In this document: in pieces, positions 9,730 to 58,898 of the stretch | How the letters are laid out: every line of letters starts with the position of its first letter | Numbering within the stretch: the first letter of the stretch is position 1 | Origin: Salisapilia sapeloensis CBS 127946 | Taxonomy: Eukaryota; Protista; Oomycota | Assembly (NCBI GenBank): GCA_023334545.1 | Contig: JAADVB010000056.1 | Span: 1 to 64,000 of the forward strand | DNA: 64,000 nt | Reading direction: 5' to 3' | The notes under the pieces: generated by a model | The model's database searches: none | What the model was told of the DNA's origin: nothing | The model's input: only the letters and a program-made list of their open reading frames with translations | Translations under genes and position numbers: made by a program

Positions 9730-11271
9730 TCATGTTGATTCGATGTGCAGCCACTCGGAAGGCGCGAGGGACAGGAGAGTCTTGAGGGAGCTCTCGCGGC
9801 TGGCGTAGGCTTCCGGAGGGTTCTGCATTAGGTGGCGAGCGGCGTCAAGGACGTCTGGGGCGTTCCACAGGAGCATGCCGACGATCTCACTCCCACGAAG
9901 GTAGTAGACGACGCCGCGAGCGTACTTGCCGTCCTCGTCTAGCGTCTTCCGAGGCGTCCGAACCCAGACGCCGACCGTCCGGAGACTAGAGTCGATCTCG
10001 CCGATGCCCTGCATGGTCACGTGGAGGCCATCCATGCGGCTGCAAAAGATGGGCTGGTGCCGGTACACCTGCAGCTGCTTGCGTCCGTCTGCGCGACTCG
10101 CGACCATGTTCCGGCCGGCGACGATGCCAGAGTTGAGCGCGGCGTCGAAGCGGTCGACTCGTCGGCGGCCGAGGCGAGGGTCAAAGTACGTGGCGGCGTT
10201 CCCGGCGACAAAGAGACCTGACAAGGCTTCGAGCTGGGCGTTGACACAGATGCCTCGCGTGCGTTCGTCGACCTCGAGGCAAGAGTCTCGGCCGAGCCGG
10301 AGGTTGGGGTCCGTGTGGGTGGAGGCGAGGACGGCGTAGTCGGCGGACAGACGCTCCTGTCTGCCGTGCACGAGCGCCTGCATCTGGATGACGCCGGGAG
10401 ACTCGGAGTCTTCCTGCAGACTCGTGATCAAGTGGTTCGGGACGAGCTCGACGCCGACAGACTCGAGTCTCCGGCCGACTTCCGACGCGAGGTAAGGAGG
10501 GAGGTATCTGCTCATAGGAGCGCTTTCGACGCATGCTAGTTGCGTCTTGAGATGGCTGTTACGAGCGTCTGTCGCGATGGCAGAAGCGACTTCGGAGCCC
10601 AAGAAACCGGCACCGAGGACCAGGACGGACGAGACGTCAGGACGAGTGTGGAGAGTATCTAGCTGTTCGAAGTCACGGACGGTCGTGCATTTGTTGACAC
10701 GGTCTTTTAAGGCATACGAGAGACGTTCTCTGTCGAGGACGTAGAAATGGCGAGGTCGGCCGGAAGAAGCGATGAGGCAAGTGTCGTACTCGATGGTCGT
10801 ACCGTCACTTAGGTGGACCGTGTGCTGTTCAGCGTCAAAACGAAGCGTCTGTTTGTTTAAAAGGAGCGTCACGACACTACTGTCTTGGGCGGAATCCCAC
10901 GAGCCTGAGAGATGACGGCGCCATTCGTTATACGTCGCTCGAAGCGACTCGGAGGTGGATGGAACGTCATTGGACGATGAAGATTGGGTGTCTACTCGAG
11001 GCTTTACGGGTTCATCGCTTAGAATCAAAATATCTGGATCCGGAGACGGATCGTCCTGCCGAATCGCCTCGATCGCCGCCAGCGCCGTCGTCCCGGACCC
11101 GATGATTACGTAGTCATGGTGCTTTCGCTGTTGCTGTCGACGCGTGAATCGGCGCGCTAGCTGCGGAGGCTGTACTCCTGGCTCGTTCTGGGACAAGGGG
11201 AGGGCGTAGGAAGCTGCAGCAGCACCGAGGACGAGAGCGAGCGGTCGAAGGCTCGACGTTCGACGGAACAT
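9730..11271 (-). CDS. AIF: Apoptosis-inducing factor (AIF)-like FAD/NAD oxidoreductase, probably mitochondrial
   Basis: Two Rossmann motifs (YVIIGSGTTA; VLVLGAGFLGSEVA) and an AIF C-terminal signature (RGVVYYLRGSEIVGMLLWN). Likely ATG at 11271 gives a basic presequence (MFRRTSSLRPL). Confidence 0.8.
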   Translation of the reverse strand: MFRRTSSLRPLALVLGAAAASYALPLSQNEPGVQPPQLARRFTRRQQQRKHHDYVIIGSGTTALAAIEAIRQDDPSPDPDILILSDEPVKPRVDTQSSSSNDVPSTSESLRATYNEWRRHLSGSWDSAQDSSVVTLLLNKQTLRFDAEQHTVHLSDGTTIEYDTCLIASSGRPRHFYVLDRERLSYALKDRVNKCTTVRDFEQLDTLHTRPDVSSVLVLGAGFLGSEVASAIATDARNSHLKTQLACVESAPMSRYLPPYLASEVGRRLESVGVELVPNHLITSLQEDSESPGVIQMQALVHGRQERLSADYAVLASTHTDPNLRLGRDSCLEVDERTRGICVNAQLEALSGLFVAGNAATYFDPRLGRRRVDRFDAALNSGIVAGRNMVASRADGRKQLQVYRHQPIFCSRMDGLHVTMQGIGEIDSSLRTVGVWVRTPRKTLDEDGKYARGVVYYLRGSEIVGMLLWNAPDVLDAARHLMQNPPEAYASRESSLKTLLSLAPSEWLHIEST

Positions 11272-11508
11272 TTTTTGTACTCGGATCCACTTGAAGTGTT
11301 TTTTACTTTTCCCCCACTTCAAGTTGTATAGTCGGATCGGTTACTGTAGTTTAAAACAAAGTGGTAAGGAATGTATCACTTATTCTTTGATAGAGTTATG
11401 CTGTGTAGGGAGTATTTGCTATGGATTTCTGATAATAGAATCAAAGAGTGTGAAAAATATTTTATTAATAATTGTTTTTATATATTGATTACGCAGTTCC
11501 AGTATAAT

Positions 11509-11580
11509 GGCTTCGTGGTCTAGTGGTATGATTCTCGCTTCGGGTGCGAGAGGTCCCGGGTTCGATTCCCGGTGAAGCCC
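11509..11580 (+). tRNA. tRNA-Pro, anticodon CGG
   Basis: GGCTTCG...TGAAGCC acceptor stem, D-arm TGGTCTAGTGGTATGA, anticodon arm CTCGC-TTCGGGT-GCGAG, T-loop GTTCGATTC; 72 nt. Confidence 0.95.
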
Positions 11581-11583
11581 CTC

Positions 11584-11588
11584 TTTTT
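11584..11588 (+). terminator. Pol III oligo-T terminator of tRNA-Pro
   Basis: TTTTT three nt after the tRNA 3' end, with a second T-run at 11591-11596. Confidence 0.7.
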
Positions 11589-12210
11589 AGTTTTTGACCA
11601 ACGCGGAAGGGACGCTCATTTCATTGCCTACCTCTGCGCTGGTGATGTCAACGTTTTGTTCGTTTTGCTCTAGGCTTTGTACAAACTTGTGGTAGCCTCT
11701 CGATGATATGACTACCTACAGAAGATGAGATATGCCAAGGCTTGTCGGAACCAGAGAAAGGCTTTTCAAATGATGGAATTAAGTGGCATAGTTTCTCTCC
11801 TGTACGCAATTCCTGCGCTATAAATAAAAATAATTGAATATATGTTGATACAACTATGAATGAGCTCTGTGGTGGTGGCAGCTATCATGACTCGTTAGAT
11901 TGTCGGACGCGATTAGTGCGATTATTTGATCACGTCGCATGCTGTGATAGATCACGCCAGCATGCACACGACTGCAATTATTGCGGTTCACATCTTTCTC
12001 TACTTGGCAAGTTCTTGAAACGCAAGGATTCACCGTCCATGATTAATATGACCAAGATCGCAGCACAAACGTACAGTCAGCCTTAAAGGTACTCGATTGA
12101 TATTGGTCAAATAATTGGCAGTCTTATCCTTTTCACCCGAGATAGAGAAAGTGTAAGTGAATCGATGAAAGTATCATCAAGTTAGACCTTTACTGTTTCT
12201 TACATTGTAG

Positions 12211-13664
12211 TGATCTAACCGGGAATAACTTCACTAAGATCGATGCAGCTCAGTTCCAACACGTCAAAACTCTGTAAAGCAACCTGAAATATGTTTCAAG
12301 TATAACATCGTAGACTAACATTCTCTTCGTAGTTCTATCTACGACAACCCTATCGAAGAATTGATCGGAGTATTTGAAAACTTGCAACAACTGTGTGTTG
12401 TATGTTTGTAAATGGTCCCACGCACACCACTTGCTGATCTTCATCTCAATAGAACTATGAGCCAAACCTTTATCAAGAATCTGAATGGAAGAAGCTTGGC
12501 CAACCTTCAGTATCTGTAAATACTCAAGTCAAAACCTCCCTAGTCGATCTTCTAACGCCTTTGAGCTAGAGTTAGCCATGAAGGAAAGCTAGAGACGCTG
12601 AATGGCGAATGGAATGAGCTCCAATTCATGTAAGCGTCTTACTACGATCATCTCACCATTTTATCTTATTTCTATTGTTTGTGCAGTGATTTGTTTGAAA
12701 ACGAGCTCTCTCAAATCAATGCGACCATGCCGAAAATTACGACAGCGCAAGCTCTAGACTTTCGTCCACCTTGTCCATAACTGATCCATGATGCATGCAC
12801 TAGAGATTTTAAATTTAATAAGCTCAAGAACTTTGGTTGTGTCTACGAGGAATTACAGAAGTTGTAAGGCATATGTGATAGCGCTATTAGGTAGAGGTGC
12901 GAGATGAGTTCATCCTGTAGATCTCTAATGGGTAACAAGCTGACGGACGGGAGTTTACGTGTATCTGGGTGTAAAAAGCTCAGCACGATGTACGTGCTTC
13001 TGTGTTTTCCTCAAGAGCATGTTGCTAAAGGATTGAAACAGCGAAATAAGCAGAACTGATATAAAGGAGATTCATGGCTTAGACACTGAAGTTTTGGAAT
13101 GAGTGCAGTATTTGTACGTCGTTATATGGGTACCTACAAAAGATAATGTCTGTTTGCTGAGTGAAGTTCAGGTATGCGAGAGACTGCGGGATGGAGGAAT
13201 GGCACGGTGTATGGTCCCAATTGAAAATGGCGTACGTTTTGCTTACATGCATATGTAGCTACAGAATCTGATATAGTTTTAATGTATACAGAGACTTACG
13301 CCGCAACAGTATAAAAAAGATCGAAGCGACTATCCCGAAAATCTCGACATTGTATGATTATATTCCATGGCACGAATATCGCTTTATATTTCTACAACAT
13401 TACTCATCTACGTCTGTATGCGATAGGAGTCTAAAGCAAAACGACCTGGGAGAAGTGGGTTTCAATCCAGCATCTTTCAACAAGACAGTCAAGTCTTACT
13501 CGGCTGTAAATGTACTGGATGTGATGCTGAAGGAAGAGGTCGAAATGTAAGTGACCTTAAGTGCTTTTTGAATAAGCAAGTTGACTTACATGCATATTTT
13601 CGTCTAAGAACATCCAAGACAATCCGATATACAACTGCATTAATCGGACCGAATTTGGACCTTC
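12211..13664 (+). pseudogene. Leucine-rich-repeat gene with one repeat per micro-exon; probably damaged (pseudogene, or needs exon skipping)
   Basis: AG/GT-bounded phase-2 exons at 12211-12273, 12333-12392, 12453-12515, 12570-12629, 12687-12746, 12804-12863, 12921-12989, 13042-13113, 13172-13231, 13292-13351 and 13427-13546, plus 13608-13664 with a defective acceptor. They translate to LRRs such as DLTGNNFTKI, SIYDNPIEEL, DLFENELSQI, SLMGNKLTD, DLRRNSIKKI and NIQDNPIYNC. There is an in-frame TGA at 13100-13102. The 5' and 3' ends of the gene are not resolved. Confidence 0.8.
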
Positions 13665-14840
13665 GTAAGTAGTCAGAAGCACATTCTCCCATGCGGAACT
13701 AAAGATAGTTTGTATTCATGTACATCTATTCGACTCCCAGATCCATAAAGCGTGCAACCAAGAAACCAGAGCGAACGTTTCTTTCACAAGAAAAGAATCC
13801 GTTCAAGTAACCGGAAAGCGTTGCAGAGATCAGATACGTACAAGGCATTGCATACCACTCCACAAACACGACGACTTTTGCTTTTTAAAGTTTTTAATCA
13901 ACTTTCTTGATAAATGGTGAACAGGAGCGAAGTTTATAGCTTCTATCGTGCCTGTCTGTATCAGCTACTCGGATACTTTGTCAATGATGATTTCTATGAT
14001 CAAACGCATTTATTTTATTGTTGCAAAGGGAGAGGTATCTTGACTTTCGTGTAGCCGACGCCTACCCTTGGAGCTCATGCCCACTGGGCTCAGCCATTCG
14101 GATATATAGCGTTGGAATGGCTCGGTTTCCATCGAGTCAAGCAACTGGAGGCAGAACACCATGTCCATCTCTTGACAGCTTATTTATATCCGGCAGTACG
14201 TGTGCTAGCCGACGATCTCTCGACATCATATGCCGTCCATCCGATGTATCTACAGTTTTCACATTCACCAAACTCAGACGACGACAGTCACGCTTTGTAG
14301 GATTCTACTCAGGTGTTGCCTAGTTACATTCCACTTGCGATCGAGGTCCAGTACCGAGTACCTCGCTTATCAGCCAATCATTTACATTTCGTACAATTTT
14401 CACGCTCTCTTGCCTCAGTCACTAGTGCTTGGCGGCATCCTACCTGTCATCTAGTCTCAGCGTGCCACCTCGAAGGAGTGGAAGGCTTACCAGTAGACCT
14501 CTTAACGAATAAACTCTTGTCTAAATGCGGTATGTTCATCTACCCGAACCATCTGATCTCGTAATGCCCACAAAGCAGAAAGGTCGAGGTATCTCCCGTC
14601 CATGCACATGCATGAATGTGAATTCGACGACTCTCCTTGCTTCAGTATAGTTCTACTGAAGTAAGACCTCGTGTACAGCTGCATGTCGCCACTGACGATC
14701 TGTCAATTCTTTTTCATGTGGCTGCGAATGGCGCAGGAGCTCCATTCATATCGACCATCATTGACAAAAGCTAGCTGAGTGTATTTCTAGAATAAGAAGC
14801 GAACGGGACACTTGTGTTCATACATCAACATACAGTAGAC

Positions 14841-15464
14841 ATGACAAGTGACGAGCACACTAGTACACCACGAGACAGCGTTGCTAGCAGTGAAGAGCGA
14901 CTTTCGAGATTGTCCAACACGACCAAGTTCGCAAGTGTCCTCCACCAGCTCTCGCACGTAGACATCAGTCGTACGTATCAATCCGGTCCTACCACCCTAT
15001 ACGTCCTGGATATCTACTTACAGTACGTCCAAAGTGGCATACCATCAAGACGAAGTTCCAACCAGAGTTCGCACGACACACCAGTGTATCGACTGGAGAA
15101 ACGGTACTCGGACTTTCGAGAGCTGCGCGATCAACTGCGCAGTGTCGTCGGTGCGAATCTAGAGAAGAAGCATACGTACTTTTGCTACTACTGCACACGC
15201 ATCAACTGGATCGTCCGGTCGCTTCCATTCCCCTCTCGAAGCATTGCAGACGGACTCATCACGAGCATCCGACCTCTTCAGAAACTTCGCATTGAGATGC
15301 GAAAGAAGAAACTCGTCTACTTCTTAAATGAGATTATCCGGTGCGCAAAAGACGGATCCTACCGCCGCGGAGACTCTCCGTGCGATGGCTTTGAAAACGT
15401 TGCGCTCGTTGTAAAGAACTTTTTCGCAGACGCAAGTGCGCGAGACTCGTGCACAGGATGGTAA
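14841..15464 (+). CDS. PX-domain-like protein of the oomycete type
   Basis: YRLEKRYSDFRELRDQL (PX-like RYSDF), a CYYC insert, FPSR, and a C-terminal helix LVYFLNEII...VVKNFF. First ATG at 14841. Confidence 0.6.
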   Translation: MTSDEHTSTPRDSVASSEERLSRLSNTTKFASVLHQLSHVDISRTYQSGPTTLYVLDIYLQYVQSGIPSRRSSNQSSHDTPVYRLEKRYSDFRELRDQLRSVVGANLEKKHTYFCYYCTRINWIVRSLPFPSRSIADGLITSIRPLQKLRIEMRKKKLVYFLNEIIRCAKDGSYRRGDSPCDGFENVALVVKNFFADASARDSCTGW

Positions 15465-56789: not shown

Positions 56790-58898
56790 CTAATACCGAA
56801 TGGTTGGTACGATGTGCTGCAGCTTCTCGAGACCTCGGAGACCACTGCCGAGGTTAGTGGCAGGAGAGAAGGCTCGACCCATGTCTTCTTCGCTACGTGC
56901 TTCCTGAACACCATTGTAGCGAAGGTCAAGCACTCGGACGCCAGTGAGCATCGAAACGTCCTGGATGCCTTGGCAGTTGCTTAGGTTGAGTATGTGGACA
57001 CGATGCAGCGCTTGGACATTCGTGACTCGTTCGCATCCGGATAGAGTCAAGGAGTGGACGTTTCCGAGCGCACTTACGTCCGAAACCTTGGTACAGTGTT
57101 TGAGCGACAGCGTGTGGACACTTGCGAGGCAGGATACGTCCTCTACTAGCGGACAGTAGCTTAGATCGAGCGTATGGACTTGGGCGAGAGCGGATACATC
57201 GCAGATGAGAGGACATCCGGCAAGTTTGAGCTCTCGGACGTTACCTAGAGCACTCACGTCTTCCACTTGGTCGCAGAACCGGAGGTCGACTTCACGAGCA
57301 TTTGCAAATGGCCGGACGTCTCGTAAGAGAGGACAGCTCGAGACGTTCACGTATCGAATGTTAGATCCTTGTAGTGCAGAAAGATCCTTCAGCACCATGC
57401 AGCGATAAGCTACTAGTCGTCTTAAAGAGGAGAGTGTTGGTGGTAACTTTTCGATCTTTGTGCTGTAGCTAATGTCGAGCTCATGGATGTCGCTCACGCC
57501 TTCTAATGACTCGATGCGAGGGCATCGTCCCATGAATAGTGTGCGTAGTCCTTTAAAGCCAGCGACGGAAGTGATGCTTCGGCAGTTGGATACGTTTAGC
57601 TTCTCTAGTCTAGTCGTAGCTTGAGCGAGAGCAGACAAGTTACTGATGCCGTCGCATAGGCGGAGGGACAGATTAACGACGCTCGTGAGCTTGGAAACGT
57701 CCCACACGAGCTTGCACATTGAAATGTCCAAAGTGTGTACGTTGCCGAGGCTAGAAACGTCTTGGATCTGCGAGCATCCACTGAGATCTAGCTCAAAGTT
57801 ACCACCCAAAGCACTCACGTCTTGGATGCCGTGACACTTGCGTAGACGCAGTGTATGGACGCTTCCAAGCGTGCTGACGTCCTTTAGATCGATGCAGCCA
57901 TTCAGTGTCAGTGTGTGGACGTTGCCAAGCGCTCGGACGTCAGTCACGTTGATGCAGCCACTCAGATTCAAATTCTGAACGTTCGCGAGCATGCTCACGT
58001 CGCGGACTAGAGGACAATTGCGTAGTTCTACTTTCTGTACGTTGGCAAGCGGAGAAACATCTTCCAGAGCCCGGCAGACGTTGGCATAGACGCTGGTGCA
58101 GTTCGAGAGTGGACGGACGTCTACGACTGCATGGCAGTAGGATATATCTACACTATCGCAGTTGTGGAGGAAAGAGAGGTCGGACAAGCGATTGCAGTAA
58201 CTTAGATCGATGTGGCTGAGGTTACTGTTGTTGTCTCCGTTCTCTAGACACGAAAGGCCGTCGAGGACGTTGCATCCACTGAGATCCAAGGACTTTAGCT
58301 GGTTGATACCTGGAAAGAGATTGACTCGATGGATGCTCGACAAGTTGATGCTCTGGACTTGGTGGTTCCGAATCAGCTCTTGGAGCTTGTCGGAAAAATC
58401 AAAACCTTCTCGCCCAAAGCCGTCTGGAGGCATCCAGTCTTCAGCTCCTTGCGTTCGAATCGATATACGCACTGGCAGCCCAGTAAAGTTGCTTACGACG
58501 TTCTCGTTCTGGCTGCTACGTTTGCTGCCTTCGTTCGTTGTACCTGGAAGAGGACGGAAGGTGATGTTCATCAGGTTTGGCCATACACGTTGGAATCGGT
58601 CCAAGTCCTCCGTCGTGCATGTCAGTGCAGTCGGCGTGTCGAGGCTAACCTGCTTGTGTAGTATCTCATAGAGAGCGACACATACTTCTGTAAGTCCAAC
58701 TGCATCTTTCAATGACAAATAAGGAACGATGGAAGCATTCCAGAGGTCTACTGGGAATCGAGTAAGCAGTAGGCTGTCGCTGAAGTTCATGGTCTTGCGA
58801 TCGACTGGCTGCATGACGGGACTGCGAAGCGCGTAATGGGAAAAGTTGGGCACTAGAAGAGCACGTGGAAAGACCAAGAGAGGCCAGCCAATGTCCAT
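56790..58898 (-). CDS. F-box-like + long 22-aa Cys-containing LRR array protein
   Basis: F-box-like segment (LTRFPVDLWNASIVPYLSLKDAV), then about 20 repeats of consensus VHTLxLSxCxxVxDVSALxx. Intronless. True start may be the second Met region (~58814). Confidence 0.8.
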   Translation of the reverse strand: MDIGWPLLVFPRALLVPNFSHYALRSPVMQPVDRKTMNFSDSLLLTRFPVDLWNASIVPYLSLKDAVGLTEVCVALYEILHKQVSLDTPTALTCTTEDLDRFQRVWPNLMNITFRPLPGTTNEGSKRSSQNENVVSNFTGLPVRISIRTQGAEDWMPPDGFGREGFDFSDKLQELIRNHQVQSINLSSIHRVNLFPGINQLKSLDLSGCNVLDGLSCLENGDNNSNLSHIDLSYCNRLSDLSFLHNCDSVDISYCHAVVDVRPLSNCTSVYANVCRALEDVSPLANVQKVELRNCPLVRDVSMLANVQNLNLSGCINVTDVRALGNVHTLTLNGCIDLKDVSTLGSVHTLRLRKCHGIQDVSALGGNFELDLSGCSQIQDVSSLGNVHTLDISMCKLVWDVSKLTSVVNLSLRLCDGISNLSALAQATTRLEKLNVSNCRSITSVAGFKGLRTLFMGRCPRIESLEGVSDIHELDISYSTKIEKLPPTLSSLRRLVAYRCMVLKDLSALQGSNIRYVNVSSCPLLRDVRPFANAREVDLRFCDQVEDVSALGNVRELKLAGCPLICDVSALAQVHTLDLSYCPLVEDVSCLASVHTLSLKHCTKVSDVSALGNVHSLTLSGCERVTNVQALHRVHILNLSNCQGIQDVSMLTGVRVLDLRYNGVQEARSEEDMGRAFSPATNLGSGLRGLEKLQHIVPTIRY

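Follow-up and report, generated by a model that had tools for sequence, protein, structure and literature searches.

A transcribed leucine-rich repeat locus with one repeat per micro-exon, probably a disabled copy from a lineage-specific oomycete family

Can a stretch of DNA with no long open reading frame hide a gene for a repeat protein, and if so, is that gene still a working one? The question is raised by positions 12211 to 13664 of the window (the whole stretch of DNA that was analyzed, 64,000 nt). There, the original prediction, made from the sequence letters, had placed a hidden multi-exon leucine-rich repeat (LRR) gene composed of symmetric phase-2 micro-exons with one repeat each, and had read it as a shuffle-ready generator of diversity. 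The RNA evidence considered here consists of the assembled contigs of four RNA runs (X2–X5; same organism, two samples, 2019), which were aligned to positions 11700–14300. The RNA and DNA data possibly derive from one strain.

The multi-exon gene proved to be real. Twelve GT..AG joints were found in the contigs of X2–X5 (the first six running from 12152/12211 to 12863/12921, the last six from 12989/13042 to 13664/13741; Table 1), and one X4 contig of 1059 nt spans positions 12086–13865 through all 12 of them. Approximately one third of the 31-mers of the locus were present in X2–X5, as expected for a spliced transcript, and a DNA run contained 0.81 of them. Ten of the 11 predicted introns were borne out by these joints. 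The exception is 12747–12803 (GC..AG), which was unspliced in four of four assemblies. Two introns supported by RNA lie outside the predicted set, one upstream (12152/12211) and one downstream (13664/13741).

The predicted exon lengths of 63, 60, 63, 60, 69, 72, 60, 60, and 120 nt, all multiples of three, match the RNA; predicted exons 5 and 6 are fused into one exon of 177 nt, and the last predicted exon measures 56 instead of 57 nt. The introns of the locus are 52–76 nt long. All junction codons are split in phase 2 and encode, in order, V, L, L, L, I, A, L, I, L, A, L, and I. As had been stated, the exons of the array end in CT, AT, GC, or TT. It is also true that no combination of exons can create a stop codon at a junction, a trivial property because the second position of the junction codon is T or C.

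Patterns of this kind could in principle arise by chance or from faulty assembly with no gene behind them, and the absence of long open reading frames is the sole observation in favor of such an artefact. Against it stand the 12 spliced joints, all of them canonical and seen in independent RNA runs, as well as the coding signal: the LRR frame contains one stop in 248 codons, where about 16 would be expected (16 and 20 stops in the two remaining frames; 16.3 ± 3.8 in shuffled sequences). The profile of the repeat unit, furthermore, matched LRR proteins only when compared with the PDB. We regard an artefact as next to impossible. The exon–intron pattern is real and lies far beyond chance.

Table 1. 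Features of the LRR locus, in positions of the window, and the RNA or sequence evidence for each
Feature	Position	Strand	Evidence and remarks
Candidate first coding exon, ATG and hydrophobic 16-residue stretch	11962..12010	+	Hypothetical; frame same as that of the LRR array
Upstream exon (exon 0)	12086..12152	+	X3 and X4 contigs start at 12086 and join 12152/12211; 0 other letters; in-frame TAA 12112–12114
LRR exon 1, 63 nt	12211..12273	+	Joints 12152/12211 and 12273/12333, GT..AG
LRR exon 2, 60 nt	12333..12392	+	Joint 12392/12453 in X2 and X3; alternative donor 12399 (+7 nt) in X4
LRR exon 3, 63 nt	12453..12515	+	RNA joints 12392/12453 and 12515/12570; paralogue of exon 8 (BLOSUM score 32)
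LRR exon 4, 60 nt	12570..12629	+	RNA joints 12515/12570 and 12629/12687; paralogue of exon 9 (score 24)
Predicted exons 5 and 6, fused with the unspliced 57-nt former intron 12747–12803	12687..12863	+	Unbroken 177 nt in X2–X5
LRR exon 7, 69 nt	12921..12989	+	Joints 12863/12921 and 12989/13042; preceding intron 12864–12920 partly retained
LRR exon 8, 72 nt, with in-frame TGA 13100–13102	13042..13113	+	RNA joints; RNA pieces with 0 other letters in 4/4 runs
LRR exon 9, 60 nt	13172..13231	+	Joints 13113/13172 and 13231/13292
LRR exon 10, 60 nt	13292..13351	+	Joints 13231/13292 and 13351/13427
Exon 11, 120 nt; a single LRR bearing a long insertion, or a pair of degenerate repeats	13427..13546	+	Joints 13351/13427 and 13546/13609 in 4/4 runs; unit alignment
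Exon 12, 56 nt as spliced	13609..13664	+	Joint 13546/13609, GT..AG, unambiguous, 4/4 runs
Last exon: short basic tail, stop, transcript 3' end	13741..13865	+	Joint 13664/13741 in 4/4 runs

The encoded protein is of the LRR kind. Alignment of 11 units revealed repeats of 20–24 residues with the pattern x-L-x-x-N-x-I/L-x-x-I/L-x3-4-F/L-x-x-L-x-x, followed by the junction Leu, and the array contains the tandem units of 20–30 residues with an LxxLxLxxN/C core by which LRR proteins are defined. The phase-2 introns split the second Leu of LxxLxLxxN, one and the same motif position throughout the array. A 19-position profile of the unit matched ten PDB chains, and all ten belong to LRR proteins (E 0.03–0.7), including LRRTM2, LRRC72, LRRC23, dynein light chain 1, TLR13, Slit2, and a 'Leucine Rich Repeat protein' (4r58). 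In a library of 1.84 billion representative proteins, the same profile gave 18 matches (E up to 1e-20), most of them metagenomic. Ten of these were looked up, and the only one bearing a name was an LRR protein. Among the 18 library matches, no close relative of the conceptual product was found (the top phmmer match had E 1e-21 and a strong repeat bias), and no oomycete protein could be identified among these generic LRR matches. Pfam searches with single-exon pieces of 29 and 39 amino acids gave no domain. Taken with the joints, the locus is a real, transcribed LRR gene that carries one repeat of ~20 residues on each tiny exon.

The reading frame of the array is interrupted. An open spliced product had been predicted, and the translation quoted for it ends before a TGA that lies in frame in exon 8. 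RNA and DNA showed zero differences over this exon in four of four runs, so the TGA is neither a sequencing error nor edited. As a result of this stop, no stop-free model exists that uses the 12 predicted exon lengths from position 12211 with GT/GC..AG introns. A second stop, the TAA in exon 0, is followed by no later ATG before the array.

Two splice sites are affected as well. Intron 12747–12803 has a GC donor and was left unspliced in the RNA, which brings in a TAA in frame at 12778–12780; five of five 31-mers sampled from 12730–12830 were found in RNA runs from three samples. Judged by its homology with the block of exon 10, intron, and exon 11, this segment is a former intron. The acceptor of exon 12 lies 1 nt off, which leaves 56 nt and puts N-I-Q-D-N-P-I-Y-N-C, a cap-like motif, out of frame: it can be read only in the +1 frame with respect to the array. 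Given the acceptor used, the basic tail of the last exon is also in the +1 frame. The boundary one base upstream would keep the frame of exon 12; it is preceded by AA, not by AG. Retention is the predicted consequence of the GC donor and a 1-nt splice slide that of the damaged acceptor, and both outcomes were observed in RNA.

Two explanations that would render the stops harmless were rejected. The use of TGA as a sense codon conflicts with the many long standard-code open reading frames in the window, and TAA accounts for two of the in-frame stops. Editing of the RNA at the lesions conflicts with the identity of RNA and DNA at exons 0 and 8, where no other letter was recorded. As a caveat, one other letter was recorded per RNA run somewhere within positions 12687–12863, and X3 additionally showed C>A at 12759.

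Introns and homology to a coding family have been kept alongside disabling lesions, the combination that defines an unprocessed pseudogene. We consider it probable (roughly 0.7) that the locus is a transcribed disabled copy, either an unprocessed pseudogene or a gene in early decay, of a lineage-specific LRR-only family in an under-sampled oomycete lineage. In such a family, each repeat of 20–24 residues would occupy its own exon of 60–72 nt, with phase-2 introns of 52–76 nt in between. The ancestral gene probably encoded ~330 residues, with perhaps a hydrophobic leader at the N-terminus, then ~13 LRRs, a cap-like NP-x-x-C motif, and a short tail of basic residues, and with neither a membrane anchor nor a signaling domain. 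In the present copy, the two in-frame stops, the lost GT donor (whose intron is retained and brings in a further stop), and the 1-nt acceptor shift block translation of the array, so that the product quoted in the original prediction cannot be made, while the RNA continues to be produced and is mostly spliced. The GC3 of the LRR exons (0.50) is below that of the neighboring genes (0.52–0.75) yet above the intron GC (0.39), which fits recent decay.

Some observations count against a pseudogene. Transcript depth is similar to that of the neighbors and most introns are removed, and a dead gene need not maintain either. In addition, exon 8 and the fused exon of 177 nt are multiples of three, so that in-frame skipping of either is conceivable in principle. 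On a rival view, the gene would be functional, and its lesions would either be bypassed by minor isoforms, through skipping of this kind or the use of other splice sites, or be confined to one strain or haplotype. The array exons are all symmetric (phase 2-2), which means that skipping keeps the frame; the RNA is abundant and spliced, and an alternative donor does exist at 12399. However, joints that skip an exon were absent from the four RNA assemblies (contigs drop rare isoforms), and the only splice variants seen in them were retained introns and the 7-nt alternative donor, which shifts the frame. No form was seen that bypasses the TAA of exon 0 or the acceptor shift. At every lesion, the RNA contigs contained the broken version, which also makes an intact, better-expressed allele unlikely. 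Overall, we consider a functional gene at this locus improbable.

The alternative donor is one of two adjacent ones, GTGTGT (12393) and GTATGT (12400), and both were used within one sample (12392/12453 in X3 and 12399/12453 in X4). Retention of intron 12864–12920 was seen in an X5 contig that is unbroken over 12687–12989 and in an X3 contig that is unspliced over 12834–12950. Both variants look like splicing noise rather than regulated use of cassettes.

The predicted period of ~120 nt is present in the gene structure and in the protein; at the DNA level, Tandem Repeats Finder detected no tandem repeat at the array. The exons share almost no DNA identity, the best DNA repeat being one of 30 nt (80%) between exons 5 and 10, which are 605 nt apart. 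The introns of the array do not align with each other, and the z-scores for exons and introns were mostly <3. At the protein level, a five-exon offset stood out with a mean BLOSUM62 score of 21.7 (other offsets, 1–10). The exon pair 5/10 scored 51, and the pairs 3/8 and 4/9 are given in Table 1. This similarity, together with the DNA match of exons 5 and 10, shows that the array expanded by an old block duplication, from exons 3–5 to exons 8–10, of which the traces can still be seen. The uniform phase and motif position of the introns are the footprint of a repeated duplication of one exon-plus-intron unit.

The original prediction had gone further and proposed a combinatorial recognition system, in which one-repeat cassettes would be varied by exon skipping or by somatic or germline recombination in the manner of the Ectocarpus LRR-ROCO genes. 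Cassette-like symmetric exons were indeed confirmed, the block duplication implies that the exon number of the array has changed, and precedents have been described in Ectocarpus and Tetrahymena (PMC3341825, PMC6564038). However, all exons were included constitutively in the assemblies, and the divergence among exons and among introns is too great for recent exchange, in agreement with the Tandem Repeats Finder result and the short best DNA match. Spare LRR exons were found neither in the introns and flanks nor on the opposite strand, and no unit matched outside the array in the 64 kb. The locus shows none of the near-identical, spare, or inverted exons and variable isoforms that recent exchange would leave. 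It has no signaling domain, and this copy is broken. The analogy with Ectocarpus extends to the architecture, whereas skipped joints, spare exons, and signs of recent exchange are absent here. With four assemblies free of skipped joints and four disabling lesions, a shuffle-ready diversity generator finds no support at this locus, and we regard it as highly improbable.

The disabled-copy reading leaves an architecture that can be compared with known systems. In the glycoprotein-hormone receptors (FSHR, LHR, and TSHR) and in plant SERK, single LRRs are encoded by exons of ~70 nt with introns of the same phase; these LRRs form receptor ectodomains on 7TM or kinase parts, and the exon numbers are fixed. 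The array described here resembles them in having a single LRR per short exon and same-phase introns, and lacks a 7TM or kinase part. Each of its repeats lies on its own exon, the exon lengths are multiples of three, and the introns share one phase and one motif position. The exon lengths are not uniform (63, 60, 63, 60, 60, 60, 69, 72, 60, 60, and 120 nt, with the fused exons 5 and 6 counted separately).

Human NLR proteins have strictly exon-modular LRR domains, and NLRP3 has been shown to skip exon 5, with functional consequences (Hoss et al., 2019, PMC6642158). As in NLRP3, LRR modules coincide with exons and skipping would be neutral for the frame; unlike in NLRP3, no skipping was seen here and neither a NACHT nor any other domain is present. 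The two are related by fold only.

Another parallel is offered by the Ectocarpus LRR-ROCO genes with 'type I LRR exons', in which one LRR is encoded per exon and the exons are uniformly 72 nt long (Zambounis et al., 2012, PMC3341825; follow-up PMC11378527). The family evolves by birth and death, and frameshifts, stops, or deletions disrupt at least half of the ROCO loci (PMC3341825); a hallmark of its shuffling is the presence of additional LRR exons, both within introns and on the opposite strand. Both systems occur in stramenopile hosts and have a single LRR per short exon with a length that is a multiple of three. The Ectocarpus unit, however, is GxxPxxLxxxxxLxxLxLxxNxLx with the intron after NxLx, whereas the exons described here are mostly 60–63 nt and the second Leu of LxxLxLxxN is split. 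This difference in intron position argues for an independent origin. In addition, the Ectocarpus proteins contain a ROC-COR GTPase, which is absent here since the transcript ends near 13865, and spare LRR exons like those of Ectocarpus were not found.

In Tetrahymena, tens of thousands of LRR exons of exactly 90 bp (30 residues) have been reported (Xiong et al., 2019, PMC6564038). More than 96% of the introns in these arrays are in phase 2, so that a 'junction' amino acid is derived from two exons, and the pattern was read as the clonal expansion of one exon–intron unit (PMC6564038). The locus studied here shares the tandem short LRR exons, the phase-2 introns, and the junction residue from two exons. 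Tetrahymena is a ciliate with exons of exactly 90 bp, in contrast to the oomycete-like host, the exons of 60, 63, 69, 72, and 120 nt, and the repeats of 20–24 residues found here. The micro-exon LRR architecture as such is already known from Ectocarpus and Tetrahymena, and the intron position indicates that the present one originated independently. Literature searches yielded no report of an oomycete family with one LRR per exon.

In brown algae and ciliates, LRR arrays on symmetric one-repeat exons have been put forward as raw material for rapid receptor diversification. The presence of this design in an oomycete lineage, where intron position and exon size differ, would add an independent origin and would suggest that duplication of exon–intron units is a recurrent route to the growth of LRR solenoids. 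More speculatively, this locus could be a dead member of a sizeable oomycete LRR-only family with symmetric phase-2 exons of 60–72 nt. The family would be a third independent LRR exon-cassette system in SAR, next to those of Ectocarpus and Tetrahymena, turning over by exon-block duplication and pseudogenization, and its intact members would vary their binding surface by in-frame skipping or by polymorphism in exon number. We put this forward as a conjecture that is unlikely to be correct.

For annotation, genes of this design are invisible to tracks based on open reading frames and are easily mis-modelled, and the RNA-verified junctions of this locus could be used to train a model for its paralogues. 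The value of this particular copy is modest, as it documents birth-and-death turnover and not a working recognition system. It also illustrates the outcome in RNA of point lesions in splice sites, namely retention after loss of a GT donor and a 1-nt slide after loss of an AG acceptor. The locus looks like an ordinary casualty of birth-and-death evolution, a decaying family member.

Both ends of the transcript were inspected. A signal-peptide-like exon had been suggested near 11961, and an ATG at 11962 could be joined to the array in frame via a candidate GT..AG intron of 66 nt (12011–12076). No RNA contig joins this candidate leader to the array, as the contigs stop at 12006 and resume only at 12086, and the candidate donor GTTCTT is unlike the other donors of the gene. 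At the 3' side, TM or kinase exons had been envisaged and were looked for; none was found, and in four of four runs the transcript ends near 13865 after a basic tail of 22 residues. All RNA contigs end between 13853 and 13865, the depth is 0 at 13875–13961, and the next gene downstream is a PX-domain open reading frame at 14814–15464.

Further RNA was observed on both sides of the gene. Contigs with a depth of 18–34 cover 11542–12006, beginning inside or just after tRNA-Pro(CGG) (11509–11581), ending at 11793, 11851, or 12006, and containing no clear open reading frame. They could represent a long 5' exon of the LRR gene, read-through from the tRNA, or a separate non-coding transcript. Between the 3' end of the LRR gene and the PX-domain open reading frame, a separate transcript of low depth was detected at 14026–14300 (contigs of 242–351 nt); it possibly represents the 5' portion of the PX gene.

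The genomic surroundings agree with the predicted oomycete host. The protein of a neighboring AIF-like gene is 52–55% identical to proteins of Pythium, Phytophthora, and Peronospora, and nothing closer was found. No LRR units accompany the AIF orthologue of Pythium oligandrum or that of another relative (Logan contig), and the locus is therefore lineage-specific. In P. oligandrum, the 5' side of AIF is occupied first by a protein-kinase gene and next by a PX-kinase gene; in the window (compared over 9730–15464), a tRNA and the LRR locus lie on this side and are followed by the PX-domain open reading frame. Synteny with P. oligandrum thus appears to be partial, with a lineage-specific insert.

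The other LRR gene of the window is intronless, as had been predicted. Its open reading frame of 702 amino acids (56790–58898, minus strand) matched Pfam LRR_4 with 4.5e-29, and the comparison with the micro-exon gene (E 0.009, 19% identity) indicates a relation at the fold level only. With regard to base composition, a stretch of low GC (0.40–0.46) extends over 11581–14760; it begins directly behind the tRNA gene, and the LRR locus lies within it. A very AT-rich block with a GC of 0.22 occupies positions 1–2000 of the window, and the adjoining genes have a GC of 0.5–0.6.
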